DNA of 64,000 nt from Ruditapes philippinarum (taxonomy: Eukaryota): the NCBI RefSeq assembly GCF_026571515.1, contig NW_026860005.1:62001-126000 (forward strand), in the 5' to 3' direction. Position numbers and translations under genes: made by a program. The notes under the pieces were generated by a model, which was given only the letters and a program-made list of their open reading frames with translations, was not told the origin of the DNA and searched no databases. Positions 40,801-61,363 of this stretch are shown here, piece by piece. Each line of letters starts with the position of its first letter. Within the stretch, counting starts at the first letter, position 1.

Positions 40801-43800
40801 TCTTTGATTAATAGCTGGTACTCGGCGTCCCGGATCTGTTCGCATTTCAAGAATGTTTTTTACACGCTGATGTATGATGTCTTCATGTTATGTTAAATAA
40901 AAACTACCAGATTCACCAGTCAACGATTTGGAAAATCTTACTAGGTGCTAGTTGTATATTGATTGTACATTTAATATAAGAACACGTTTTACGTTCAAAA
41001 CAAATTATAAAATAGTAATGACGAATTTTCAGGACTATTTAATCATTTCGATAGTATATACATTTTTTTCTGAAATGCAAATAATTCGTTATATATTTCA
41101 TAATGGAACTGTTATGCATTTTTTTTGACAAACCTCATTTAGTTGTTTATACTTATTTACATATGGATGATTAATGGTCAATATAGAAACAAAACAATTA
41201 GCTGAAATTTACCAAATATTTCCACTATTCGAGGATAATGACTGACTCGATCAACATTAATAAGGGAATAATTTAACTATTTAATTAACGCCCTTACAAG
41301 GGCTATATCTACTACATCATTTAACTATCTAACGCCACAAGGGCTATATCTACTACGATGAATTTATAACATAAAACATTTAAATGAAATATCAATGCTA
41401 ACATTTCTGCAAGGTATAAATATAAAAACAATTATAATATAGTTACTTACCCAATCTTACAAATATTTCGTTGGTTTTTTCCCTTAAAGCAGTCCATAAT
41501 AAGAAATGATTCTGTGTTACATTGGATAATCACTTCTTGTTTTGTTGTTTTCATATTTGTCTAATTTACTTTATTTAGATTAATGGAGAACTTACGGCTG
41601 GAGAAAATATTGCAGATAATGGCGGAAGCAAGGAAAGCTTTAAGGTATAAAACAAATACAAATATATATACAAATGTATAAAGGTTATATGTCCTTCGGA
41701 GATTTAAGGGGTTATTACTGCAGGTATACAAAGAATCAATTTGAAAACATGTTTTGAAATTTAATTTCACTTAGACAGACTCCCAATAAATATTTGTTTA
41801 ATGTTACATCACTTTATTTTCCCTGTAATACCAGTGCTGACAATTTACATTCATTCTTGTTCTATACAGAAAGTACTAACGTGCTAGTAATTGTACTAAA
41901 GTCTAGTTCACGGAAATGGAAACAAATCATACATGAGTCAGTGCTGTATAAGTATACATGTATTAGTCTTTTTTTAAGAGCCTTGTTACCATGTAAACAG
42001 TTACTCTCGAATTAGATAATCGTGTCTGTACTGACAGCCGGTATGTGATTCTTATTATATGCTCGAGCCATTTTGAAGAATCCCACACGCGCCGGGGGAT
42101 TTACTGTGATTTCTACATTTGATTTGTATATCCAAAAGTAATTTCCGCCCTGTATAGACGCTAAGGATAAATTCTTATTATACATTCCCGATCTAAGAGT
42201 AAAATTCATCCAAACTATTATTGATGTAAAAAGGAGATTAAGTGATTTAATGAAGTAGTATTTAAGACGACCTTATTGCTTAAATAGCCTTTAACATGTA
42301 TCAACCACCACTTTGGACAAATCACTTGTAACACATGTTACCTTTTACGAATACGATCCTATTTGCAAACAGGACTGTAAAAGAAACTGTTACAATTGTG
42401 ATTTGTAACGAATATGATCCGACAATGCTACGTTTGACTATATTCTGCCTTTTTTTTAAACCAGGCATATCGTAATTGGGTAAAAAGAAGCCGGCAAGGT
42501 ATAGAAGAGCAGAAACTACCTGGGTTAGATTATACACCTAACCAATTATTTTTTCTGAATGAAGCACAGGTGAGAAGTTTTTTTCATGAAGAAAAATACA
42601 TATTTATTTATAATTAAATTCTTGTATTCATCATATTATATGTCAGTTATTTTGTTTTATTTGTAATCTTTATATATCTTTAAAAGTTGGAATAAAATAC
42701 AAAAGTTTGATTCCCGACCTTAAATTAAAACAAATCTTTTATTTAGACTGACGTGGATTAACTGATAGCTTTATCTGAACAAATCTGCTGTAGTACCGTT
42801 ACCTGCGATCACCTATCAATGAGTTTGTAAAGGAAAATATGTCCCTGACTAACCTGAAAACCCCACCGCGTTACTAACACATATGCCAGACACATCTAAC
42901 TTCAAAAACTTCTTCATTCACTTTTTCATGTTTAAAGTCTGACTACTGCTTAAGCCGCGTGCTACGGGCGCGCTGACGAGAATAGGCCTGCAACTACCAC
43001 TACCGTCCATGAAAGCGCACCCTATCTCTCACACCAATCACGTCAACTTTTTCTACCCCCCGGCCGAAACCGGCGGCGGATACTAAAAATTACATGCTCC
43101 TCACGTCCCGTCGACCTTCGTCCTCCGCTCTACTACAATTGCCTGTTCTCCCATGTGTCTACATCGCTAGTACAGACAGCTTTATGTGCACCATTCGATC
43201 CTCACAATATGCTTGACCACCCTAGCCACACTTCAACCCCACATCCTCTCAGCATAGCTAGGTATAAATGTTCTTTCATTCGGCTTCTTTAAAGAGGCCA
43301 ATAGTATAAAGAAAAAAAGACCACATTATTTGACGGAAAAATGTTCCGTCTAACCGCGACATCGTACTGTCCTTTTCAGTGTTTCTCCCTTTAATCAGCT
43401 CAACCTTCGTCTCACGGTATATACTGCATATTCTAGATTGATTTCCGTTACATATTGTTAGTCCGCGACTCAACATAAATAGTAAATTACAAGTGGGAAC
43501 CAAATACGCAGCTACCTGGCCAGAATATCGCGCATGCGCTGAAATTCATCTGACCATGTGCGCAAGGTGAGTAGTCAAATTACTTATGTGTTTCAATATG
43601 TTGAACTAACTTTATATATCTACTCTAATCGATTTATTTTTATAAATAAGATACATAAAGAATAGTGTCTTTTCTCTAATGCATGTGTTGTTGCAGACAT
43701 GAAAGTAATACATGTTGTGCGTCCGTTGCGGGCCAAAAAATCTCCACTGCGTATCTTTTAGTGGTAACCGTGTAGACAACATTTGTAAAATGGCGGACGT

Positions 43801-46800
43801 GTTGATTGACCTGATAGTGTTAATTTTGTATTTTACTACTTTTAATCCTCTGCACACTGATTTTGATATCTGTTAAGATGGTATCTAGTGATTAACTTTG
43901 TGGACTCAAACTGTCTGTTTCTGTCATGGGTCACGGGATTCTTACAGTACAGTTTCAAAAGAGTGTGTATTTGCAATTGATAATTTGTCTTCGTACCGCG
44001 TTGTATCTTATACTATATAAACAAACAATGCACCTGTCTTCGTGGCTTACATAATAATGCACCGGTTATCGATTATGTAACTTAGTCTAGATGTTTGTGT
44101 AATTCAACTTGACTACATCTACATATCATAAACTATTGTACTAGCTAACATTTTAAAATTCCTACGGCTACTTTTTATTACTATTATACTGACTTCAATA
44201 CATTTTAACTGAGTTGCTTGTGTTTCTTTACGATAAAATTCGTGCCTACTCTTGAGAAGTGGTCCACACAGCAGAACTACAAGGCGGACGTATGCATGAA
44301 TACTGCAAACGAACAAGCATATCAAACCAGACACTACTGGAAGACAAATTAAATATTCCGTGAAGAACTTAATCATATTCATTCATTTAGCTATCACTTT
44401 ATGCTTCTGTTTTTAGCGCCCAAAGATCATGTCAACAATCCTGTGTCTCACTTCTACAGCTAAGGAAGATACCGTATACTAAAATATGCTTACCTGAAGT
44501 AAGTAATCTTATCGACCTTTTTTGTAAACAATCGAGGTATAAGTAAATCTTAATAAAGCTCTCATTGTTTGCAATCTTAATACTTATTCACTTAATATAT
44601 CCATAAGTTATATACAAATAAAATAAGTGCAAAGAATAACCGTAGTATTCTTGCTCCCAGGTCCTTATTTTCTTCCCCACCAATTCTGTGAAAATTTTAA
44701 CAAAACCAGAGTCGGATTAGTTTAAATGAATATCGCGGTAATATGGCCAATGACGTGGTGCTCTATGACCTATTACACCTTAGACATCTACCATGTAACG
44801 TATAACTCCACCCCTAACAGACTGCTTTACACAGTTAAAAATTAACTTGAAATCGAAAGGTTCACAATATCTTTATTTTGGAGAAATTAAGCTTGCAGCT
44901 GTGAAAACATCATTGCTCATTTCATGGATTTAATTGGATTATGATTAGAGATAAGTGTCTATATTTTTTGTTATTGAAAGGAAATGCTCGCTGTGAATAC
45001 ACTCTAGAATAAGAGTAACTAGACACCAACATCAATGATAATGTAGTGATATCTTTCATTTAATTTTCAGTACTATGGATATCCATTTGTTCTGGTGTAG
45101 ATTACCTGGGTTACCTAGAAAAATGAAATGGCCAGTAAAAGTGAAAGAATGGGCATGATGACAAAAGCACTTGTCTACTGTAGGTCTGATGATGCATTGT
45201 AAGTTTTTTTCATTATTCTTCAATTAATGATTATGTATTCATCTTTCTAGTAAGCTATCACATATATTAAACCTACTCTCTTTCAACTTGCTTTTCACAA
45301 TTATTAACTGATGGCACATATCACATTCAACTTGATATATGAAGATGAGGAGTCAGAGCCTTGATAACGTTACCGTCTGCATGTAGCATTTTTTTTACAT
45401 GGAAGTATTTTTGTTTCAGTTCCAACACACTTGTGAATATTATTCGTAATTTATTTGTAGCTTTAGTATTACGAGGGATCATATGGTATCTTTTCCTGGG
45501 CCATTTGAAACATTACAAAACATAGGCATTGGTATAGTACCAGTTGTTAGCTACAGTACGCACATCGCATAACTTTCCCAACGCACACCCTACCCCGCGA
45601 TTTTGCTCAAGCGTGTTCACCATATTTTGAACCCCCAAGAAAGGGTTTTCACGGTGATAAGCGGCCTCAAACATGGTGGTCACGGACACGATGTGTTGAG
45701 GTGTTCATTCGCAGTGATTTCACTGTGTTCTTTTTCTGTAAAAATCAACTCACCTGCCATTCCAGTGTAATTAAAAAAAATAATAATTAAAATCCATTTA
45801 AAAAACCTATTTTTAATGCTGCCTGATGGATCCGATTTTGACAAACATTGATTAAAAAAAACGAAGACCAATACACACACACAAACTATTTTGACTCGCA
45901 CTAAAATAATTGAACTAATAATAATCCGATGAAAATATTTTCTTTTCACTTGATGTTTACGTGAGCAATTATTAAAGACATGTATAATCTTTTCTTCACA
46001 AAAATGATCGGCGAATGTCAAAGTTAGCAACCTCTTTGATTTCGGTTGAGTAAAGTCGCAGCGTCTAAACAATTCTTTTGAAGTGTCGGTTATAGGCACC
46101 TGTAAAAAGGTCAACTTGTCTATTTATTAGAATCTACATGAATTTATATTTTCAGTTGTGTTGTGCATACAATTTAACATTTTTCATATATAATTTGCTT
46201 GGCACAAGTTTGATTAAATTAATATAAATTTATGCGAGTGTTTTAAAAATTGTGCATTTTAGCAGTATGGAATTCAGGCAATCTTGAGGGATAACTCATT
46301 TATTTTATTGTTAATAACTATGTAGACTGTCAAAAGTTGATGGATTAAATCTTTATAAATCAGAAAGGTAATTTTTAATCACCCATTTATATCAAATTCT
46401 GAAGACTATTTTGTTTGTCCGCAACATATTTACACAAAAACGCGCATTCTCATGCATATTCGGGTAGCTGAATTAACCAGTTTTAGGGGATTTTCGAAAA
46501 ATTATTTTACATGATTAAAAAGATCATTAGTCAAGACTTGTTGTTTTGTATTATTTGAGCCTTCACAAGTCTGCCATACAAAAATGAGAATAGAGAAACG
46601 CGATATTCACACATTTTCTTTAGCTTCCCAGCGTTTGTTTTGGCTTGGAACAATTACAGTATTATGAATTAAATAAAAGTGCGAAAACAAGGTAATATCT
46701 AAACATAACTTAACCTTTTTTTGTGCTTCAAAGCTGATGAAACCACAGTGGAAATATTATGAAAAATATTTGTTGTTGTTAAAAAATATCGAATGAACAC

Positions 46801-49800
46801 CGAGAATCATCGTGTGGGGACACCATGAACCACTGTGTGCACACTTCAGTGTCCTCTAAGATATCTGATCGTATCCGTGACACTGTGATTGAACATGCTC
46901 AATAAATTTTCGTTGCAGTGTTCGCATGGAAAAGGGAAGTTAACGCGATGCGCATACTGTATTACTGCTTTGTTTCAAACCTTTACTTTTGATTGTTCTC
47001 ATTGCAGTTAAATGTAAGAAAGTTCTAAAATAGCTTTTGTTATAGTTACAAACCTGGGTTGTCACTAGGTATTTTTCTTGGAAGGCTTATTTTGAATTAA
47101 AAGTTATATATTTAATTAGGGGTGTGCAATATATCGCAATATATCAGTTATCGCAATATATTCTCTGACAATATAATATTGCAATATGATTTTAAAATAT
47201 TGCAATATTTCAATTGCATTGTTAGAATGATGTCTAAAACATGGTTGAATATTAGCATTTAAAGAAAGAAAGGAAAAAAATCTTGCAAAAAAAAAAAATG
47301 TTTACTTAGCTCATTTCCGGTCTTGTTACAGGATTTTTTTACTTAATTTGTTTTTTATTTTACTTAAAAACAAGTTAGACCTCAGTCACATAAGGGGACA
47401 CAAACATAAAACAGGAATAGCTTATTTAGTGTTCAAATATTTCATTTCCATGATTTCTATATGGTCACAATATATTGCAGTATTTATTAAAATATCGCAA
47501 TATATCGCAATACCATTTTGTCTGGCAATACTCAGGCCTATATTTAATAACATAGAATAAAGAGTGTTTCCTTGTTTCGTGGCAGTCATTTTGGCATCCA
47601 GCCTCCTATTGACAACCCGAGTTAACTGTTATAATTGCTTGATTCAATGCATGAAAAATGTTCTGAATTATACATTCCTGTACAGATATTTTAAAATGCA
47701 GATGCCTACTGTATTAATTAATTTTTATTGATGTCATGTAAAGCAAAAGGTTGTTTAAAGTGAGCTTACTGCTATTGCCATGTACATTATGTGTCATTAA
47801 GGTGTTGCTTTAAAAGCAAATACATTTTACACCACAGGCTTAATTGAAACCAAACTTGAAGGATCCTTAGGTGTTCCCCTTTAAAAAAAATCAAAAAGTT
47901 AAATTTATTGATCTTAAAAGAATAAAATTATCTCTCAGAAGCCACAGGGCTTAAACTTAAGATAATTGTACATAATAGTTTAGCAATATCTTGCACAACA
48001 CATGGTTGTCATTTCATTTATCTCTGTAATTGGCTTAGTTAACTTAAGAATCTGTATGTATGTGGTTTTAGTCATAATTATAAATGTAATGTTCAAAATT
48101 CATCTTAGAATATGACCATAAAAAATGAAAATTTTTAAATAAATTAAAAAAAAAATTCTGACAAAAAGGATTTTTGTTGTCTAAATACTTTCATGTAATG
48201 AATCATGATAAACATTAAGGCTTGAAATGTTACTTTCTGGTTTGAAGTTGAATTACCATTGAACAATTTTCTTCTCATTTAGTTTGCCTCCTTACTGTTT
48301 AGCTTACAAGATTATCATGTAATCTTCTGTTTTTTATATATATTTAAGACTCTTTAAAGAAGAAAAAAACAACTCTAAAAGCTTTTAAAGAGGACATAGA
48401 CTGGGCCTTGGCTGAAGTCTTGAATGGTAAGTAATTTGCTTACCACAGTACTTTGAATGATCAGAATGATCTGATCATGATCTTTTTTTTGTGACATTGT
48501 TTTATCGTAATTAAAGATTTGCATGCAGTCTTATAATTAATTTTAACAAAAAAGAGTGTAGTGAATTGAATCTATAATCTTGTGTCATTCTTAAATTGTA
48601 ATTGTTTATGTCGATATAGACTATATACTATATCCTTTCTAATATACCAATATCTTTACACTGCCACAACCATACTCAGCCACATTACATGAGTGACAAG
48701 ATTCGGAGATTCCATATGAAAATGCAATTTTCCGGCTGTCAATCTCTTATAAAATGTTCGCTATCTAATGCGTGTCTTTATGGCCTCAGAAACAAGTCAC
48801 AATAGTCGAAATGCCACAAAGATTAGGACAGTCATTTAAGCAAGAAATATTTAATTTTACCAACATTAACCATCATAAGAACAAAGAAACTATGTCTTCT
48901 ATGGCCTCAAACTTAAATGGCAACAATAATGATGGACAACGAATGTACTAACCTAAGACTATCATGAGCACTGGGATAAACATCTCCATGATACTGTCTT
49001 ATCACCAATATATTGTTGTTGTCATCCTTTCTAGCGCAAACCAACAGAGTTGAGGAGAGCTGTTCAGATAATACAAATGACCACCCAATGTTGTGCACAT
49101 GCACAATCCGAAGCAGCAAGAACTATTGGATGCGATGATGCGTGCGGCCAGGAACTCAAGATAATCAAGTCTACACGTTGACGACAATAATCTGTGACAG
49201 TGACACAAAGAACCGGTAAATCTCTCAGACTCGATGCGTTGTATTGAGCTAATGTTACAACATTCAAAATCTTAATCATTGTCCTCCAATATTGCAACTC
49301 TATCAGTCGTATGTAAGGTATAAAGTGACCAGCATTACCATACATTTTTTCATGATATGACTGCATCTATGATTGGCCTTGCGATTAAAAAGCCACCAAC
49401 TGAGCACATGATTGCCTGAAGATCCATTGCAATTGCACATCAGATATTTTAAACTAAAAAAACATACACTCCTGCATTAATGTGTCTATAATGGCCTTTA
49501 AAAAACTTGTCACATATAGATGGATAAGACTGGAAAGTATGAAATGAAAGGCAGGTTTCATTTTACAAATTATTCCGTTCTGTAATAATATGTCTTCTGT
49601 GGCTTCTAAGACAAGTCACATAATGATAGACAAAGTTTTCAAAGTGGATTGAAGATTTCTTTATTTAATTCATTTATTCTGTTGTTGTCTTTCAGCAAAC
49701 ACATTTGTGGTGGAGAGTTGTTCAGGTGATTATGACATGAATGATTGTCACATGGAAATACAAAGCAACAACTTTAGTGGTAACATACAACATCAACGTT

Positions 49801-52800
49801 ACAAATCTGTTGAAAATGATAACTGTGGTGAGTTTCTGTTTTTGATTTGCAAACATTGATCCCATTTTTTCATTTTTTACATAAAAAAAATATGTTTATC
49901 TGTTTGCTGAGTGAAAAAGTATAAATTATATCTTAAATATTGTGTCTCAAAAAAAAAGTATTTGGTGATACATAATACAGTGTGTGTTTAAGTTTACAAT
50001 ACATTCTGAATCTTGAGTGTCTTCTTTGGCCTCTAAAATAAGTCACATGAAGATGGACAAGATAGCAAGATCATGAATAGAATTTATGTTTCATTTTACA
50101 AGTTATTCTAAATCAATGTGTCTCATAAAGCTACAATAAATTGGCCACATTATGATGGACAAGATTTCAAAATAAGCATGGAATAAAATGCATATTCAAT
50201 TTATTAACACCAATTGTTATTGTCTTATAGAAATCAAGCAGAATGAGGAGAGCTGTTCAGGTGATTCAAATGATGGCAATGATGATGACATAGAAATACA
50301 AGACAACACGTTTGTTGACAGAAATGATGGTGACATGGAAATTCAGGAGAACAAATCTGTAAATGACAATGATGGTGACCTTAAAATTCACAACAAATTT
50401 ATCAACGACAATGATGGTGACATGGAAATTCAGGAGAACAAATCTGTCAACGACAATGATGGTGACATAGAAATTCAGGACAACAAATCTGTCAATGACA
50501 ATGATGGTGACCTTAAAATTCACAACAAATTTATCAACGACAATGATGGTGACATAGAAATTCAGAACAACAAATCTGTCAATGACAATGATGGTGACCT
50601 TAAAATTCACAACAAATTTATCAACGGCAATGATGATGACATAGAAATACAAGACAACACGTTTGTTGACAGAAATGATGGTGACATGGAAATTCAGAAC
50701 AACAAATCAGTCAATGACGATAAAGTTGACATGGAAATTTACATCAACAAATCTGCCGATAGTAATGATAGTGACATAGAAATTCACGACAAATATGTCA
50801 CCAGCAATGACAGTGGTGAGTTAATGTCTTTTAATTTGAAAGCTTATTTTTTTATCCTTCTTTTACTTTCATAATAGCCTATTAATCTAGTAGTTGGGAG
50901 GGAGAATTTTAAATTTGTCTTCAATATATTGTGCCTGTTGTTTGGGTTTTAAGGTTTAGGTTTTATGGAACAAACACATACCAATATTTGTGCATTTAAT
51001 GAATAATATTTGAAAATGATATGAAATACAGTGTGTGTTTAAGTTTACAATACATTCTGAATCTTGAGTGTCTTCTTTGGCCTCTAAAATAAGTCACATG
51101 AAGATGGACAAGATAGCAAGATCATGAATAGAATTTATGTTTCATTTTACAAGTTATTCTAAATCAATGTGTCTCATAAAGCTACAATAAATTGGCCACA
51201 TTATGATGGACAAGATTTCAAAATAAGCATGGAATAAAATGCATATTCAATTTATTAACACCAATTGTTATTGTCTTATAGAAATCAAGCAGAATGAGGA
51301 GAGCTGTTCAGATGATTCAAATGATGGCAATGATGATGACATAGAAATACAAGACAACACGTTTGTTGACAGAAATGATGGTGACATGGAAATTCAGGAG
51401 AACAAATCTGTCAACGACAATGATGGTGACATAGAAATTCAGGACAACAAATCTGTCAATGACAATGATGGTGACCTTAAAATTCACAACAAATTTATCA
51501 ACGACAATGATGGTGACATGGAAATTCAGGAGAACAAATCTGTCAATGACAATGATGGTGACATAGAAATTCAGGAGAACAAATCTGTCAATGACAATGA
51601 TGGTGACATAGAAATTCAGGACAACAAATCTGTCAATGACAATGATGGTGACCTTAAAATTCACAACAAATTTATCAACGACAATGATGGTGACATAGAA
51701 ATTCAGGACAACAAATCTGTCAATGACAATGATGGTGACCCTAAAATTCACAACAAATTTATCAACGGCAATGATGGTGACATAGAAATTCTAAACAACA
51801 AATCTGTCAATGACAATGATGGTGACCTTAAAATTCACAACAAATTTATCAACGGCAATGATGATGACATAGAAATACAAGACAACACGTTTGTTGACAG
51901 AAATGATGGTGACATGGAAATTCAGAACAACAAATCAGTCAATGACGATAAAGTTGACATGGAAATTTACATCAACAAATCTGCCGATAGTAATGATATT
52001 GACATAGAAATTCACGACAAATATGTCACCAGCAATGACAGTGGTGAGTTAATGTCTTTAAATTTGAAAACTTATTTTTTTATCCTTCTTTTACTTTTCA
52101 TAATAGCCTATTAATCTAGTAGTTGGGAGGGAGAATTTTAAATTTGTCTTCAATATATTGTGCCTGTTGTTTGGGTTTTAAGGTTTAGGTTTTATGGAAC
52201 AAACACATACCAATATTTGTGCATTTAATGAATAATATTTGAAAATGATATGAAATACAGTGTGTGTTTAAGTTTACAATACATTCTGAATCTTGAGTGT
52301 CTTCTTTGGCCTCTAAAATAAGTCACATGAAGATGGACAAGATAGCAAGATCATGAATAGAATTTATGTTTCATTATACAAGTTATTCTAAATCAATGTG
52401 TCTCATAAAGCTACAATAAATTGGCCACATTATGATGGACAAGATTTCAAAATAAGCATGGAATAAAATGCATATTCAATTTATGAACACCAATTGTTAT
52501 TGTCTTATAGAAATCAAACAGAATGAGGAGAGCTGTTCAGATGATTCAAATGATGGCAATGATGATGACATAGAAATACAAGACAACACGTTTGTTGACG
52601 GTAATGATGGTGACATGGAAATTCAGAACAACAAATATGTTGACAGTGATAATGGTGGTGAGTTAATGTTTGATAATAAAGTTTTAGTAGTGTTTTTAGT
52701 CAAAAGTATGATTGAATAGATCTGAATATGCCATGTCAACTTGCATGTTGTGAATAATACATGGCATATTAATGGGATATTTATAGCCATGAAAAAGCCA

Positions 52801-55800
52801 CATATTGATGGACATGATTAAAAAGGGATCATAGATGTATATGCTTCGGATTTGTTAACATTATACTTGTAAACTTGGTGTTTTGTTAGCAGACATACAA
52901 CACAATGAAGGATATGAATATGATCATTTTAGAAAACTGACTATTATTTAATCATTATTGTCATGATGGTCTTAAGTTATGCCCTGTATGCAAATTCAAA
53001 TGCATCAATATAAAGTCACTTATATTGAAATCCATACGTTCTGACAGTTACTCATGTTTTTTTTTCAGAGTCTGACTTCAGCTATGATGATGATAAAGAT
53101 GAAGATTATGTCTTGCCTTCAGACATTGATTCAGACGAAGAGGTTTGTCCAGCACCAGACATGTCAAAGTTTCTGAAGAAGCATGTTGAAACCAAGATTT
53201 TGTTTGAAAATGTTAATGAATCAGCAGATTGCCTTGGTTGCTGCTCTGTTCCAGACATCCAGAAGAAAACTGCTGCGGCCAAGAATATGTACAAGAGAGT
53301 TACTGAATCAGCAGATTCACTTGATAGTAATTGTTATGTTCAAGGCATTGGAAATGATGCTACTGTTCCCCTGGAAAATGTAAGCGATTTAGAACTGAAA
53401 AGGTTAGATGAGGACAAAATTATCAGAGATGTGAATTTAAGAAAAATTTACATGCGAAAGCACATGAAATTGTCCGGAAAGCAAAGTCAACAGATGCGGA
53501 AAAAAACTACTGAAAGAATATATAACAATTACCACTGTTGTTTTTATTGCTCTAGATTTGTACAATACATAAGCACACACATGAAAACTCACAGAAACAT
53601 AGATGCTGTGCGAAACATAATGAAAATGACGAACCCAGATTTCAGTACAATAAGAAAGCTAGGAGATGATAAAAATAATCAAAAAGTAGTGGAGATGAAA
53701 GAGGGTGAGTTTCTCATTGCCCGTCGACCAAACAAACAACTACTTGGATGTTCAACAATATGGGCCTTGTCCCCATTGTAGGGAATGGCTCAACTTAATG
53801 GTTTAAAGAAGCACATTCACCAGTGTTTGAAAGGAAGCTCTGAGGATGAAATAAAAGAGAGTGTAGGCAACTGTGTCTTGAAATCCCAAGTCATGGCTGG
53901 ATTTATATCTTCAAAAACCAGCAAGGTCATGAGAGAAGAAGTCTTGCCAGCAATGAAGAGAGATACTGTTCGACATGTTGTTATAAATGACAAACTCATA
54001 CTAATGCTTGGAGAAAGTTGGTTGAGACGAAATGTTGACAATGTTGAAAAGAGAAAATACTATGCCAGTCAGCATATGCGACTTGTAGCAAAAATGTTGC
54101 TTGAGTTGAGAAAAATGAAGGAGTATGAGGAAGGAAATGTAACTGAACAAAATAATGATGACACAGAAACTGCACTCTGGGAGTTTCTGAAACCAGGTTG
54201 TTTTGACAAGATTGTTGATGCTTCCCTTCAAGTTTCATTGCCAGATATGGATGACATGAGTGAACTGAAAGCACCCAAGTAATGCTATAAAATTGAAGTA
54301 CGATCTGAAACGATTGGTCAATATGAAGTATGCCTTTCTGATGAAAACAAACCAAGAAGGCAGAGAAGTCTCTGATTGTAAATCGTTCCTGGAGCTAATG
54401 AATTTAGAATGGAGTGAAAGAGTAACAAAGATTGCCAGGACTATCCTGCAGAAGAGAAAGTACATAGAAAGCAAAGACTTGCCTTCACCTGATGACATTG
54501 AAAAGTTGACTAAATATCTTGTGTCACAATTAGAGTCTATGGAACTGATCCCAGACAATTACATGAAAATTAATGCTCTGTGTCAAACACGCTTGATGAT
54601 GTATAACAAAAGGCGTTCAGGAGAACTTGAAGTAATTAGGTAAGTGATTCAATAAGCAAGTACATTTATTACATATAGTAAGCTTAAAAATTTGTGTTCA
54701 GATAGCTTTCCTTTTTTCTAATAGGTGAACTTAAAATAATATTTTCTTTGCAAAAGATTAAATAAAAGGATACGTTAACATCCAACAATTGTCACCTTAT
54801 ATCAACGTTATTTTGACTTGCGCTTGAAGTGTTTCAGTAGCTTGAAATAATATATTTTCTATCACATCTCAGTCTTCAGAGTTATGCAGCCAGAAGAAAA
54901 GACCTGTCTGACATTGACGAATCTGTGGCAGCTGATCTAACAAAAGTGGAGACATACTTGCTAAAGTCTCAAGAGTTGATGACAGTTCGAGGCAAGGTAA
55001 ATTTTCATATCTTTAAATATTATTTGCTTTCCTGAGAAATTCTGGTGATGAGCTTTTAGATCTTGTGATCCAAGTGAATTACCGATGAAAATTAATTGGC
55101 CTATTGCCTAAATGGCCAAAAATCTCCACTCAACTGAACATTAATACAGCTGCATAAGTAGACAAAAACAATGCCCTTCAAGGTCAAATCCCGGGCTCAT
55201 AAGTGACCTTGAACTTCAAGGTCTTCAAATTATTGTATTTTGCTTGATTTTTGCTATAGTTTTCTATAACATTGTTATTTATAGATGGATTGTCTACAGA
55301 CTTCACAATGCTTGTGTCAAGACCTAGAAGAACAAACTGAATTTGACCTTTACCTTTATATGACCTTGAATTTAGCTAAAATGGTGATAACTTTGTTAAT
55401 AATGGACAGATTTGATTGATACTTGGACAAAAAAAAAACACTTAAGGCAAAATCGACATTTTTCTTTCTCCAAGTTTGACCATGGCCTATCTATGACCTT
55501 GACCATCAAGGTCAAATTATTGAATTAAACTATAATTCACTATAACTTTGTTATAAATGGATGGACCGTCTAAAGACTTGGACAAAACGACAACTAGGAA
55601 TATATATAGTCTAGTATAACTGTTCATAATTAGTCTCTTAAGACCTGTCTATAAGTCTCTTAAACTTGTCCATAATTAGTCTCTTAAAACCTGTCCTGAA
55701 TTAGTCTCCTAAAACCTGTCCATAATTAGTCTCTTAAACCTGTCCATAATTAAGTCTCATAAAACATGTCCTGAATTAGTCTCTTAAAACCTGTCCAAAA

Positions 55801-58800
55801 TTAGTCTCTTAAAAACATGTCCATAATTAGTATCTTAAACCCTATCCATAATTAATTAGTTTCTTAAAACCTGTCCATAATTAGTCTCTTAAACCTGTCC
55901 ATAAGTAGTCTCTTAAACCTGTCCATAATTAGTCTCTTTAAACCTGTCCATAATTAGTCTCTTAAACCTGTCCATAATTAGTCTCTTTAAGCCTGTCCAT
56001 AATTAGTCTCTTAAAACCTGTCCATAATTAGTCTCTTAAACCTATCAATAATTAGTCTCTTTAAGCCTGTCCATAATTAGTCTCTTAAAACCTGTCCATA
56101 ATTAGTCTCTTAAAACCTGTCCATAATTAGTATCTAAAAACCTGTCCATAATTTATTAGTTTCTTTAAACCTGTCCTTAATTAGTCTCTTAAACCTGTCA
56201 TTAATTAGTCTCTTAAAACCTGTCCATAAGTAGTCTTATAAAATCTGTCTACAAGTAAACCTTACTTTTTTAGGGTGGAAGACCTGTACCTGTTATTGTA
56301 CCCCAAGATGTGAAGGGTCCATTAGACTTCATTGCATCAAAGATGACCAGAAAAGCAGCTGGAATAAGTGAAAGCAACAAGTACTTGTTTCCAAATACTG
56401 GTGAGCAATTGAAAAATAAAGTTTTATAAGACATAATGATCAAATACATGTCTTCTAAAAATACTTACAACCATTTTTATATTAGTGCTCATAATTTTCA
56501 AAGTTGATTGTCATCTGTTAAAGAAATGATCTATTATAGCTGAAGTTGTATACATGTCATCAGTATGCAACTAATACCAAGGTTTCAGATAAAAAAGCAT
56601 AAATTGTCGATGTTTATATTTCTGTTAATAACACTTGAAAAAGTTGTGAATATCGAACTAACTAAAATAATTGAATGTTTTTACCATTTGTTTGCATATT
56701 AATACATTCTGGAACATTTAATTTCGCTACAATTTCTGTTGCAAATATGTAAACAAAGTTGTAATATTGACCTTGCCTGTACATGTAATGTAAATATTTG
56801 GGACTCTTCACCTGTTGTATTTCTTTATCACACAATATTTATATGCTGTGTATCTTTGTCAAAGTATCCTATTTTTTATGTTTTTTTTTTATTTTTATGC
56901 TTTTAATAAAATCTTTTACGATGTTCTGCGTAATACACTTAATGGGTACATTTCCTTTCAGCTCTCAAGTACATTAGAGCATATGACAGCTTGAAGATTG
57001 CATGCGATTCGTGCAAGCTGAAATCGCCCCAGCGAATAACAAGTGTGGCCATGAGAAAATATACTGCTACCTTGTCACAGGTTTGTTTCAGCAGTTAAAT
57101 GAATTGATACCTATATGGAAAAATGTAGAGCTCATTAGAAGCCGCAAATTGAGAAATATGACATTGCTAAAATGAAGAAGAAATTGTCTTGGCAGCATCA
57201 TAAACCTTCAGTCTGTTGAGGTCTATGACATTTTCATTCTTATGAAACTTTGTCAGAATGTTTATACTGTTTAAATGATCATAGAGCTCAAAACATGGCC
57301 ATGTGCATCAACCCTTAATCTTTGTTAAGGGGTTAATGTTTGAAACAGTTTTTGTCATGACCCCTATTTATAAGTTTGCAATCCAATTTCTTCCAGCTGA
57401 TGAATCTTGATAAGTACCAGATGGACTGGCTGTGTCGTCACCTTGGCCATACAAAACCTGTCCACAGAGAAGCATACAGGCAAATGTCTGGTTTGATTGA
57501 GAGAGTCTATGTTACCAAACTAATGATGGTGCAAGACTTGAATTTAACCGGGCAGTTCAAGGGGCAGTCATTAGAAGATATTGATTTGAAAGGTACAGCT
57601 GTCTTTTATATATAAATTTTCTTGGTACTGGGTATATTTGCTTGCCAGCTTAGCTCAATATTTCTGACATTAAGTCTAAGGTCGTTTTTATCTCAGTGCT
57701 GATTCAGAAATCACATTTTATAACTAGTTAATTCTTTTTATAATATTGACAGTGAACAGTGCACATAATGCAGTCCTTGGAATTGACATTAAATTTTTTT
57801 ATTCTAGTATATTAATTTTGTAGCATGTTCATATTAATTGCAGATTAAGTTACAGTTGGTTGGATTTATCTGCAGGGTATTATTTAATATTTTGACATAT
57901 TGCTGCTAATTTAAGAATAATACAAGCGTGTATTTATGTCTCAGATATTGTGTATGGGGCAGATGAGCAGCAGGAAGGAAGAAGAGTTGATGAGACTTTA
58001 GACTCTGTTGATGGGTAAGTATATTATGTTGTGCTGTCAAGAAGTAAATTGGTAAATGTATTTTACACCTCGAAATGCTTGATGATACTGCGTGATTACT
58101 AGATGACTTTGATGTTGCTTGACTTGCAGCTTCTCTTATGGTTTTTTTTCTCAATTAAATATTTCTGAGGACTGTATCTTTAACAAAATAGATTATGAAG
58201 GACACAACATAACTAATTAGTCTGCATAAAAATCAGGCCAAGTGCATATTGTGGCATTGCTTCATGAAATCAATAATACAACTCGACATGCTGTCATTTC
58301 AACAATACATAGTGGCTTATTTGATTAGAAGGATGTTAAGTAAGGGTAAATATGTACCAAAATTGATGTAACATTGACTAGATCAATATGGTGTAATTTT
58401 TAAAGATTCTTGTATCAACTGTTTACAGTATACATGAAGACTCTGACTGTACTCAAGACAAACAGTCAGGAAAAAGAAACTTCAGTGCTATTTCCTCAGA
58501 TGAAGAAGAAGATAAAGTACATGCACCAGAAAAAAAGAAAAGGAAAAAGATGACAGCTCGTCAGAGATGGACTGATACTGAAGTTGAAGAGTTAAGGACT
58601 TATTCTAAAACCTACCTTGACAGTGGAATAACTCCTCGCAGACCTGCTTGTTTAAAAGCAAAAAAAATGAGTCAGGAAAAGGGTGGTGAGATTTGGAGAA
58701 GGGCAAATCTGCACCTAATTATCAAGAAGATCAGCAATATGAACCATAAGTAAAACCACTGAGTTTAATTAAACATTGTTCATATTGCCATAAGAATTTG

Positions 58801-61363
58801 TCCTTTAGAATATTGTTGTAATCTTAAATACTTATTGTTGGATTTTCATGGAAATTACATATAGGTCAGTCAGCTTAACACAGTGTTTCTTTTTTTAAAT
58901 GACTGGTTAAATAAGATAGTACACTTCTGTTAGCCTATTAATTTAGGAAAAGCATAGAGTTATTATAATGGGAGAGAGAGTATTACCATGGAATGTGTGC
59001 ATGGTACATTGACATTGTAAATCTGAATTTTGTAACCATAATTCAACCTTGTTCCTCAGATTTTTTTGTTTACCCTTGTTTATTCATTGATCTGAAGCCA
59101 TTTTCATCTAGTGTTCTTTATTTCTTTAGCCTGTTAAGGACTTGTTAGAAAAAATATAGGCTACCTAAAAACATTTATTTTTCATTGCAAATGTTGTTTT
59201 GTTCATCAACAGTTATTTTTCTCCATCTTATGAATAAAGTTATAAAGGAGGCACTCTGTTTTGTTTTGTTTCATTATGTGACATTGTGCATCATTAACCC
59301 TTCATAGTATTTATAACCATGTAAAATTTCTTAAAAATTTACCTATTCAAATAACTTGTATAACATGCAGAAATCGTGATGAAATATCAACATAATACAT
59401 GTCTGTTGCCATAACTGAATTTCACTAAGGCCATTTACTGACAGATTATGGTTACCTGTTGAGAAATTAGTAATGACTGCTTAGTTGTCCCAAGAAAGCC
59501 ATTAAGATGGACCTAGTACTGAGATATGAACAAAAATGTATAGAGAAATGCATGTAATCCAGACAAACAAAAGGAATTGTTTGTCTCTTGTTAAGTTTTC
59601 TACCAACTAGACCATCAAACTCTTATTTACAGTTCTTGTTAAACATGTATGTTCTATAAAGAGATTAAATACTTTTATTTAGACTCTTTAAATACGGACA
59701 TAAGTCAACACATAAAACTGAAATGTTAGAAAACTTTTTGAAGACACATAAAACCTAATTGAATGAAGTCACATTATCCATAGACTCTTAAACCCAAAAT
59801 GTTGGTCCGTCCTTCCGTCCGTCCGTCCGTCCGATATTTTTGTCCGGAGCATATCTCTAAAAGTATTTGAGTAATCAACTTGAAACTTCATAATTGAATA
59901 GACCTTATTGAGGAGGAGTGCAGTGCACAAGAATGATAACTCTACCCTGCATAATTTTTGAGTTATTGCCCTTTGTTATTTTTCAAAATTGATTTTTGTC
60001 AAGAGCATAACTCCAAAAGCCTATGAGATATCAACATGAAACTTCATAGGTGCATAGATCTCACTCAGGAGGTGTGCAGTGCACAAGAATGATAACTCTA
60101 CTCTTCATCATTTTTGAGTTATTGCCCTTTGTTAGTTTTCATACTTAATTGTTCAATTCAATTTTTTCTCAAAAAGTATTTGAGGTATCAACTTGAAACT
60201 TCATAGGTGGATAGATTTTACTGAGGAGGGATGCAGCACACAAGAATGATAACATACCCTGCATTATTTTTCAGTCATTGCCCTTTGTTATTTTCCGCCA
60301 TCAGTATTCACATAGGTTTCAAATCTGTAATCACTATAGCCTATAGCCATCAGTTTTCATTACCAAAAGACCTCTTAAAATGGAATTATTCTGCTGTTCT
60401 ACATATACATTCTTCCAATGAGCAAACACATTCGGCGGGGGATGGCCTTGTTGACATGGCTCTTGTTTATTTTGTTGTTGTTGATGTTCTTTACGGATTC
60501 AATGTTTTCTCGGTTGTATCTATAAGGCTAAGAAGATGCCTTACACTAAGTTATCACTCTTCCTATTTGTTCGTATTTCATACAAACGATGTAGGATGAT
60601 TACAGAAATGTTTATTGCCTTCCTTAGGTTTGGTGTGGTGACATGAAGAATGAAGAAAAAATTAAACAAATTCATACGGACCCTCACAGTTATTTCATGT
60701 TCAGGTACAACTACAATGTATTTGCAAATGCAATATGTATATTCACTACAACTATTAGGAACATACTTTGCATTTTCAGTCAATGAAAGAAAATATACTT
60801 AGTCCTTATAATGTATATGCATATTGTGAAAAATAAAGAGATTTAAGTAGATTTTTAAATGCAAAACTTTTTTAGACGAAATGCAACACCATATAGTAAC
60901 GTTAAATGAAAACTTTATTACACATTTATTGAACATATAAACGAGTATGTGTATTATTTATTTATAAATAACTTAATAATAAAGCGAAGTCATGCAACTT
61001 AAAATAGATCAGTGACTTGTCACGACTCGTATTGAACATCACTCGATTGTGCCCTTAGTATGCAGGCATGTCCCTTCATAACTCAGCAATGATTGATTAA
61101 TTAATGTTCGCTTACCAGCTCTATTACAAGTAGAGAAACTGATAGCGAACAGCATGGATCCTGATCAGACTGCACGCATGCGCAGGCTGGTCTGGATCCA
61201 TGCTGGTCGAAAACGCACTATGTTGGCTTTGTCGTGACGCGGCTCATTTAATCTATTTTTCAGAGTGGTAGGACCTCTACAAAATTCAGTGGAGTTTTCG
61301 AAAGCCTGGAATTGCCCGATCGGTTCTTACATGAATCCCCCGGACAAATGTTCGGTTTGGTAG
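25829..61363 (+). CDS. Neprilysin-like M13 zinc metallopeptidase, 20 exons (~693 codons; N-terminal exon unresolved)
   Basis: Exons 25829-25876, 26750-26911, 28094-28177, 28509-28726, 30305-30484, 31637-31723, 32511-32644, 34741-34837, 35455-35583, 36579-36677, 37111-37188, 37615-37718, 38105-38163, 38934-38985, 39444-39511, 40339-40472, 41579-41644, 42465-42569, 60628-60704, 61264-61363; all GT-AG, phase-consistent, no stops. Motifs: [81 protein letters not shown]. Confidence 0.95.
27210..27590. repeat. Degenerate minisatellite (AAAGAATGTTATAACGTTTTT-like)
   Basis: About 12 variable units within a neprilysin intron. Confidence 0.7.
27921..28057. mobile_element. Half copy of the palindromic MITE flanked by a 40-bp duplication
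   Basis: Flanks 27881-27920 and 28058-28097 are identical apart from 1 nt. Confidence 0.85.
29584..30274. mobile_element. TIR element carrying two convergent tRNA-like modules
   Basis: Imperfect ~30-bp TIR (TCCAACAATATTGATCTGGCGC / GTGCCAGGTCAATGTTGTTGGA); + strand A/B boxes at ~29708-29763; - strand A/B boxes at ~30085-30146. Confidence 0.65.
30630..31600. repeat. ~43-45-bp minisatellite (GCAATTATATGTGAACATTCTTTGAATCATTTAATACAAGGCA)
   Basis: About 20 tandem units, with near-identical units at ~31260-31400. Confidence 0.9.
31819..31993. mobile_element. Palindromic MITE with TGAGCC..GGCTCA termini
   Basis: Terminal inverted repeats plus the internal GATCAGGATCCATGCTG palindrome. Confidence 0.8.
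32760..34665 (+). mobile_element. Truncated, internally deleted L2/CR1-group LINE (RT fragments, 3' UTR, tail)
   Basis: [65 protein letters not shown]; ends with AATAAA plus (TATGT)n at ~34640-34665. Confidence 0.85.
33290..33506 (-). mobile_element. tRNA-derived SINE inserted into the LINE
   Basis: Minus-strand A box TGGTCGAGGGG, B box GGTTCGATCCC and (CAAA)n tail; 12-bp TSD TTAAAGCTATGC at 33278-33289 and 33507-33518. Confidence 0.88.
39444..39511 (+). CDS. Neprilysin-like exon with the HExxH zinc-binding motif
   Basis: [22 protein letters not shown]. Confidence 0.95.
40499..41139. mobile_element. Tc1/mariner-type MITE
   Basis: Imperfect TIRs TACGAGGTTTGTCTAAAAGTTCACATAAC and GTTATGCATTTTTTTTGACAAACCTCAT. 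Confidence 0.65.
43480..43800 (+). promoter_or_regulatory. Putative promoter/5' region of the nested YR gene
   Basis: CpG-rich; NRF1-like CGCGCATGCGCT (~43529); YY1-like AAAATGGCGG (43787-43796); donor CAAG|GTGAGT at ~43566; candidate UTR exon 44417-44498. Confidence 0.4.
45672..46827. mobile_element. Non-autonomous TIR DNA element in an intron of the YR gene
   Basis: ~38-bp imperfect TIRs CATGGTGGTCACGGACACGATG..GGTGTTCATTCG and CGAATGAACACC..CATCGTGTGGGGACACCATG. Confidence 0.7.
47117..47540. mobile_element. MITE with TAGG..CCTA termini and ATATCGCAATAT subterminal repeats
   Basis: TAGGGGTGTGCAATATATCGC ... GCAATACTCAGGCCTA. Confidence 0.6.
49970..52660 (+). repeat. Tandem exon+intron duplication (3 near-identical units) with internal 42/45-bp coding repeats
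   Basis: The intron block AATACAGTGTGTGTTTAAG...TGTCTTATAG recurs at ~49974, ~51025 and ~52254; exons encode DNDGD(I/M)EIQxNKSVN and [14 protein letters not shown]. Confidence 0.95.
53069..57592 (+). CDS. Zinc-finger and tyrosine recombinase core exons of the nested gene
   Basis: [20 protein letters not shown]; [18 protein letters not shown]; [13 protein letters not shown]; [12 protein letters not shown]; MYNKRRSGE; RGKGGRPVPV; NKYLF; [10 protein letters not shown]; [19 protein letters not shown]. Confidence 0.88.
55615..56245. repeat. ~25-27-bp minisatellite (CCTGTCCATAATTAGTCTCTTAAAA)
   Basis: More than 20 tandem units directly upstream of the 56274 acceptor. Confidence 0.92.
59803..60468 (+). 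mobile_element. 5'-truncated Helentron/HINE-type element
   Basis: (GTCC)n at 59805-59832; ~157-bp tandem units; 3' GGCGGGGGATGGCCTTGTTGACATGGCTCTTGTTT. Confidence 0.75.
60628..61363 (+). CDS. Last two neprilysin-like exons, displaced beyond the 18-kb intron
   Basis: [26 protein letters not shown] | [32 protein letters not shown]; joins in phase 0 to the exon ending at 42569 (..QLFFLNEAQ). Confidence 0.93.
61106..61246. mobile_element. Palindromic MITE family, partial copy
   Basis: Matches 27921-28057 and 31819-31993; ends GCGGCTCA. Confidence 0.8.

Follow-up and report, generated by a model that had tools for sequence, protein, structure and literature searches.

Two described systems couple an integration enzyme to chromatin. 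The integrases of chromoviral (Ty3/Gypsy) elements have a built-in chromodomain that is thought to steer insertion by chromatin state, and lentiviral integrase is linked to chromatin by the PWWP domain of LEDGF/p75. Here, we describe an element from the clam Ruditapes philippinarum in which a PWWP-like domain may be attached to a tyrosine recombinase through splicing. The element lies in a 64,000-nucleotide stretch of AT-rich eukaryotic DNA (contig NW_026860005.1, positions 62,001 to 126,000 of the forward strand), which we refer to as the window and in whose coordinates all positions are given.

Like the chromoviral integrases, this element would have a Royal-family reader domain within its own integration enzyme. 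Theirs, however, is a C-terminal chromodomain on the DDE integrase of a long terminal repeat retrotransposon, whereas here the domain would be N-terminal, PWWP-like, carried by a tyrosine recombinase, and dependent on splicing. As in the LEDGF/p75 case, a PWWP domain would link an integration enzyme to chromatin, which is a proposal for the clam element; LEDGF/p75 is a host cofactor, whereas here the domain is encoded by the element itself. Crypton-type elements are similar in having a sole large gene with a tyrosine-recombinase fold, introns, and few near-identical copies accompanied by deletion derivatives, a comparison that rests on copy number, on the high-identity span 44737-59831, on gene structure, and on the recombinase fold. 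The clam element differs from them in giving no match to PF00589 or DUF3504 at E <= 10 and in having zinc fingers, acidic cassettes, a Myb-like tail, and a PWWP-like head. By analogy with third-intron control of the P element, alternative splicing may set which form of the transposase protein is made. In the literature searched, we found neither an element-encoded PWWP domain on a tyrosine recombinase nor a paper that joins PWWP and Crypton, and the papers that pair PWWP with a tyrosine recombinase or transposase described no element-encoded PWWP.

The stretch from approximately 44737 to 59831 is one of four genomic copies of the element that are ~98-99% identical (C8492, which is the window copy, C7258, C8517, and C4749). 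The element is ~15-17 kb long and has multiplied recently, and the window copy is slightly damaged. Its gene product is large and combines acidic repeats with zinc fingers, a tyrosine-recombinase fold, and a Myb-like tail. The reading that we favor, and hold with moderate confidence, is that this damaged copy encodes an ancestral PWWP-fold head on three small exons (Table 1) and that splicing of the middle exon decides whether the head is attached to the recombinase. Exon 1 would supply strands 1 to 3 of the barrel, the middle exon strands 4 and 5 and the first helix, and exon 3 the long final helix. Inclusion of the middle exon would give an in-frame fusion of domain and recombinase, the arrangement annotated in oysters, and the fused domain would most likely tether the recombinase to chromatin or DNA. 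In the sampled RNA the dominant splice would run from exon 1 to exon 3, which would leave the barrel exon as a 53-codon upstream open reading frame (uORF) that overlaps the recombinase start at 45189; in this skipped form the recombinase would be made, if at all, without the barrel.

The first coding exon is bounded by the acceptor ttttcag and the donor gtaagt and carries the motif pattern W..L.G.P....WPV.V....VYC.SD.A. Its first ATG has a strong context, with A at -3 and G at +4. X1, a set of Logan contigs, has a loose end before 45069 that represents an upstream exon at its 3' end; this sequence is matched exactly in C7258 ~930 bp 5' of the exon 1 of that copy. This upstream exon bears an in-frame TAA; therefore, the ATG at 45075 is the first ATG of its frame. 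The window copy of exon 1 has an extra G at 45151 and an extra A at 45163, both in homopolymer runs, and its frame meets TGA TGA. Both bases are missing from C7258, C4749, the X1 contig, and a lone read of the stranded RNA sample X24, while the lone X21 read at this exon lacks the G and has the A. Without the two bases, an open frame of 40 codons (MDIHLFW...) plus 2 nt runs from the ATG. Either the assembly is in error here or the window copy has a lesion of its own. The initial annotation, made from the window sequence alone, had read through the exon with one 1-nt correction at ~45149. That correction introduces five wrong residues (MGMMT for WHDD) and is replaced by the removal of these two bases, which gives ..KEWHDDKALVY..

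Exon 1 is retained in at least eight diverged subfamilies of the clam genome, where ..[SA]D.A plus 2 nt is always followed by GTAAG. Because the proportion of nonsynonymous differences between subfamilies (pN, 0.23-0.54) is far below that of synonymous differences (pS, 0.50-0.96), and because the other two frames are filled with stops, exon 1 is a translated and selected coding exon, under purifying selection in the frame that had been proposed for it. A profile of exon 1 matched 62 proteins at E <= 1e-3 among 1.84 billion, mostly short open reading frames (ORFs) that stop at the same exon boundary, and the exon 1 of the clam paralog C12125 occurs in XP_060555754.1.

Modeling indicates that the N-terminal module is a divergent PWWP-fold domain at the level of the family. 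The AlphaFold2 model of a homolog from the annelid Owenia fusiformis (P0083, CAH1798896.1) had a mean predicted local distance difference test score (pLDDT) of 82, with a core above 90. It contains strands at residues 17-21, 29-38, 43-48, and 53-58, a short fifth bridge at 62-63, and helices at 70-79 and 84-106. Foldseek matched this model to PWWP and Tudor structures only (probability 1.0), and its 50 best entries in VIA-align were all PWWP domains (Z 8.3-10.2 over 83-95 aligned residues). By Z, the closest structures were ZMYND11 and BRPF1; the best Foldseek matches were of the Shuguo PWWP domain bound to single-stranded DNA. Thus, the PWWP fold that had been proposed from the sequence holds for the family. 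Among sequence comparisons, PF00855 was the top Pfam family for the stand-alone homologs P0067 and P0083 (15.6 and 13.1 bits), and the best PDB match of the exon 1 profile was the PWWP motif of ZMYND11 (E 0.12). The single exon peptides of the window matched no Pfam family even at E <= 10 and are too short to decide. A PDB sequence search with the alignment of stand-alone domains found no match, a protein search with the same alignment recovered its own members only, and a metagenome scan with the protein P0012 gave no match.

The likeness to the PWWP readers (ZMYND11/BS69, BRPF1, NSD2/3, DNMT3A/B, and HDGF/LEDGF) extends to a five-stranded barrel with two helices in the modeled homolog, a shared start of the form W..[KL].G.P..WP..V, and a basic stretch before the last helix. 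The element domain differs from them in its subthreshold Pfam score, an insert of 3-4 residues in the PWWP motif, an aliphatic first cage position, a conserved Cys-x-Ser-Asp-x-Ala after strand 3, and its place on the recombinase of a mobile element. The conserved elements of the family are the W of strand 1, G-[LI]-P, W-P-V, and [VI]-[YF]-C-x-[SA]-D-x-A, and a 3-residue insert is needed to align the consensus G-[LI]-P-x-x-[ML]-x-W-P-V with KGFGFWPAKV of ZMYND11. In the alignment of the exon 1 profile to ZMYND11, the first aromatic-cage position falls on Leu or Ile in this family; the corresponding residue of ZMYND11 is Phe. The aromatic cage thus looks incomplete as judged from the alignment. 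This aliphatic residue is one reason to consider that the domain binds DNA, for example, element ends or single-stranded DNA, and does not read H3K36 methylation. The Shuguo complexes at the top of the Foldseek matches and the run of basic residues that opens exon 3 point the same way, and PWWP domains generally also bind DNA. Set against these are the Trp of the WP motif, which is invariant, the aromatic residue (Y/F) of strand 3, which is conserved in an uncertain register, and the fact that the two structures closest by Z belong to H3K36me3 readers. We regard a purely DNA-binding role as possible, on the doubtful side.

The reading of an attachable head is carried further by homologs in which the module is continuous. 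In RefSeq proteins from three Crassostrea gigas loci (LOC117690845, LOC117685927, and LOC109620100), the exon 1 motif, a middle part of 22 residues, and the exon 3 motif follow one another in one frame, and these proteins continue with repeats, zinc fingers, the recombinase, and a Myb-like tail. The module of ~90 residues also stands alone, in Owenia CAH1798896.1 and in one Logan ORF. These proteins show that the module is ancestral in the family and that it can occur as a fusion with the recombinase. The initial annotation had asked whether homologs lack this N-terminus; oyster, Owenia, and Mizuhopecten proteins have it. Its claim of a fusion is borne out in part: the C. gigas proteins are fused in frame, while the sole reported joint of exon 1 in the clam breaks the frame and the Dreissena isoforms start at an internal ATGATG.

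Exon 3, in the frame originally noted, matches the N-terminus of all isoforms of Dreissena polymorpha LOC127843707 (..LKNRKGTLQAFKDDIKWAQ) and the Ruditapes paralog on C4215 (KLKNRPATLKCFEEDFEWAAREV), which encodes XP_060588870.1. It is also matched in the paralogs C12125 and C3086 and internally in the oyster proteins. What follows exon 3 corresponds to the homologous proteins: variable acidic cassette repeats, zinc fingers, the recombinase, and the Myb-like tail. Conservation and read depth thus uphold exons 1 and 3 at the positions first given for them, and exon 2 is not singled out by either.

The recombinase body has a tyrosine-recombinase fold, as had been proposed, according to the structure predicted for a paralog. 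An AlphaFold2 model of the catalytic part of P0057 (pLDDT 67) gave XerH, XerA, XerD, phage and transposon integrases, lambda Int, and Cre as the top Foldseek rows, followed by topoisomerase IB (E 3e-3, probability 1.0). As candidates for the catalytic residues R-K-H-R-H/W-Y, the motifs NKRRSGE, GK..VPV, MRKY.ATL, and HLGH...H...YR were recognized by eye. In Pfam, the paralogs P0057 and P0051 and the window exons matched no family at E <= 10.

The existence of a middle exon is suggested by phase. Both the end of exon 1 and the start of exon 3 hold 2 nt of a codon, and the same phases are found in C12125 and C3086. Since these phases are conserved in three subfamilies, the frame can be continuous only if there is a middle exon with a length of 3n+2. 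The candidate exon 2 is open, and its 71 nt fit this rule. By eye, it keeps the exact Owenia spacing of 25 residues from ..D.A to the L of LKKK/LRRK, along with the pattern of strand, turn, strand, and helix. In a hand reading of the splice-site sequences, we found no AG or GT that restores the frame between exons 1 and 3. Three other candidates for a middle exon were rejected: the match 'GPFDALQN' in C14559 falls in another frame of a recombinase exon, no in-phase splicing is possible for 'PGPF', which lies 5' of the C12125 exon 3, and the segment 47421-47479 has no read support.

Reads were then considered as evidence of splicing. X1 depth is 84-139 on exon 1, exon 3, and 49722-49907, against 30-40 in introns, and X1 contains the GT..AG joints 45198->48349 (depth 119) and 49826->50230. 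X24 has three reads in the region; single-read joints are not listed for it, and splicing was deduced from binned depth. The X24 bin 45444-45629 holds ~65 nt of depth, and the neighboring bins are empty. In a reconstruction that matches the binned depths exactly, one X24 read would consist of 85 nt of exon 1 and 65 nt within 45461/45467-45531. A second would comprise 20 nt ending at 46264, 48072-48090, the whole of exon 3, and 33 nt from 49035, and the third 27 nt at the start of exon 1, continuing into unlike sequence upstream. X21 is labeled as transcriptomic RNA-Seq, behaves like Hi-C or DNA, and was not used as RNA evidence; on 44700-50250, its loose ends begin or end with GATC, its strands are equally represented, and its cover of introns is even.

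Skipping of exon 2 puts the barrel exon out of frame with the recombinase and turns exon 1 into an overlapping upstream ORF. With 45198 joined to 48349, the exon 1 frame runs for 13 more codons to a TAA, for a total of 53 codons. The frame of exon 3 is then entered from ATG ATG CAT T at the end of exon 1, giving MMH-Y-SLKKKK... All seven of the seven Dreissena isoforms begin with MMQF followed by ALKNRKGTLQAF (MMQF-ALKNRKG..), and MMQF is the start expected from ..GATGATGCAGT joined to exon 3. This correspondence suggests that the Dreissena annotation, too, represents the skipped form.

Several results weigh against an attachable head in the window. The homologs P0067 and P0083 both fall below the PF00855 gathering score of 25.6 bits, and, as the fold evidence comes from a full-length Owenia homolog, the fold call applies to the family and not to the window copy. 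The intron holds 64 open AG..GT segments of length 3n+2, 24 of them of suitable length. The candidate exon 2 ranks ~39th of the 64 with a domain profile built from four sequences and 2nd to 3rd of the 24 in anchored alignments; because neither approach singles out 45461-45531, exon 2 is unproven by homology. Searches of the paralogs by tblastn, by all-against-all scoring of AG..GT segments, and by DNA footprinting found no conserved middle exon (conservation at the DNA level in the paralog comparison is limited to exon 1). The RNA nature of X1 is only guessed. The sole joint reported to leave exon 1 skips exon 2, and an unspliced X1 contig (45169-45768) crosses exon 2 unbroken at background depth; inclusion of exon 2 in X1 is rare or absent. 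The read that passes from exon 1 to exon 2 is itself a reconstruction from the binned depth of three reads. Finally, each of the four near-identical copies has at least one lesion. The initial annotation had the three exons spliced in phase. The only listed joint of exon 1 does not agree with this, and the connection of exon 1 to exon 2 appears in the X24 reconstruction only.

In a different account, the barrel exon is never joined to the recombinase in this clam lineage, exon 1 is a conserved uORF (of 38-53 residues, or purely regulatory) that throttles the ORF starting at 45189, and exon 2 is a chance segment. The skipping joint, the Dreissena RefSeq proteins that begin at the equivalent ATGATG, the failure of exon 2 to stand out among other candidate segments, and the strong context of the first ATG all favor it. 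So does an ATG in the 45189 frame, which eight of the nine exon 1 sequences examined contain 1-5 codons ahead of their last nucleotide; this conservation, however, follows automatically from the conserved D/N-A codons. The account is opposed by homologs in which exons 1 and 3 form opposite ends of a single PWWP fold, by phases conserved as if an exon of length 3n+2 lay between them, by the fused oyster proteins, and by the ~65 nt of stranded RNA read in the exon 2 bin, the neighbors of which are empty. On balance, we consider it rather unlikely that exon 1 acts as a uORF only.

A stronger version of the reading that we favor is that middle-exon splicing is a regulated switch, for example, between germline and soma. 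Inclusion would produce a PWWP-recombinase from the first ATG, tethered to H3K36-methylated gene bodies, and skipping would allow the uORF to silence or truncate the product. We consider this improbable; if true, it would mean splicing-controlled, self-encoded chromatin targeting in tyrosine-recombinase transposons common to bivalves and annelids. That the three exons are meaningless chance open frames in an intron, as the lack of a Pfam family for the single exon peptides at E <= 10 might suggest, is already refuted for exons 1 and 3, which are conserved across subfamilies, species, and phyla, have dN well below dS, and show exon-level depth peaks with GT..AG joints; we give this view next to no weight.

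Conservation of the domain extends over oysters, clams, a scallop, and an annelid; it is also found on a BRCT protein, and its identification gives a name to an unannotated domain of many lophotrochozoan gene models. Were it a tether, the element would offer a simple system for guidance of recombinase transposition by chromatin marks in animals with methylated gene bodies. The overlap between the barrel ORF and the recombinase start, set by one small exon, would be a compact case of splicing-dependent control of a transposase. The BRCT protein is Mizuhopecten yessoensis OWF47137.1 (P0115), which has a PWWP-like head, repeats, and two BRCT domains (Pfam E 1.8e-16) and no recombinase; either it is a 5' part that was domesticated or captured, or the gene model is a chimera.

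Table 1. Features of the element gene in the window.
Feature	Position	Strand	Remarks
Exon 1, first coding exon; PWWP-like barrel strands 1-3	45071..45198	+	ATG at 45075; last 2 nt are a partial codon
ATGATGCATT, 3' end of exon 1 in the +1 frame; putative start of the recombinase ORF on skipping	45189..45198	+	Predicted from sequence and the joint 45198->48349
Candidate exon 2; strands 4-5 and helix 1	45461..45531	+	71 nt; 65 nt if the AG at 45465-45466 is used
Putative alternative stop-filled exon, 3' end	46245..46264	+	Donor GTATGG at 46265; from one X24 read
Putative alternative 19-nt micro-exon with stops in the exon 3 frame	48072..48090	+	From the same X24 read as 46264
Exon 3; long C-terminal PWWP-like helix (K..TL.AF.EDI.WA..EV)	48349..48426	+	Opens with 2 nt of a codon
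TAA that terminates the exon 1 frame on skipping	48386..48388	+	From sequence and the joint 45198->48349
Putative downstream cassette exon, start	49035..49067	+	In frame with exon 3; from the same X24 read as 46264
Acidic cassette exon	49696..49826	+	X1 depth 136; spliced 49826->50230; start as in the initial annotation
Large exon; zinc fingers and N-terminal half of the recombinase	53029..54640	+	Window copy broken
Downstream exons; putative recombinase catalytic motifs and Myb-like tail	56274..58750	+	

The damage to the window copy extends to the large exon, which is interrupted by a stop at 53779 and shifted in frame near 54280; the same exon is open over 537-566 codons in C8517 and C7258. 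In C7258, insertions lie at 46510 (~1.09 kb) and, 15 nt 5' of exon 3, at 48333 (~1.74 kb). C4749 has a 344-bp insertion within exon 3 (with an 8-bp overlap, 48352-48359) and a frameshift in the large exon, and C8517 carries a single exon 1 indel and, near 52831, an insertion of 6.9 kb. The secondary insertions of these three copies (1.09, 1.74, 0.34, and 6.9 kb) each lie at a different site. Three further loci, C14559 (L031), C9993 (L030), and C14140 (L033), keep exon 1 and the 3' recombinase exons and have lost the middle; they look like internal-deletion, non-autonomous derivatives. In these loci the final recombinase exons lie only 1-2.5 kb past exon 1.

Upstream of the near-identical body, positions 43300-44737 are 77-88% identical to C7258 (L012) with many small indels, unlike the 98-99% identity of the body downstream; over 43300-44600 the identity is 80-88%. 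This segment contains the spliced upstream exon of the X1 transcripts and a GCGCATGCGC palindrome near 43530.

Between exon 3 and the large exon, three tandem units of ~1.05 kb make up positions 50176-52716, and an acidic repeat exon is present in every unit. The equivalent place in Dreissena, Crassostrea, and Ruditapes paralogs is taken by unrelated cassette repeats, acidic or of other kinds, and their isoforms vary in repeat number. X1 shows a 1,540-bp skip from 48604 to 50143 (GT..TG, depth 21), the inside of which has mostly zero depth; the copy of the X1 individual is probably one without this segment. An X1 contig leaves exon 3 after 48381 and continues for 101 letters, the first 30 of which are unique in the genome, at C8907:175800. 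The C8907 site (L019, 175776-175829) is preceded by a similar A-rich stretch and has an open frame of ~70 codons; the contig could represent a chimera, a polymorphic insertion, or a paralogous exon.

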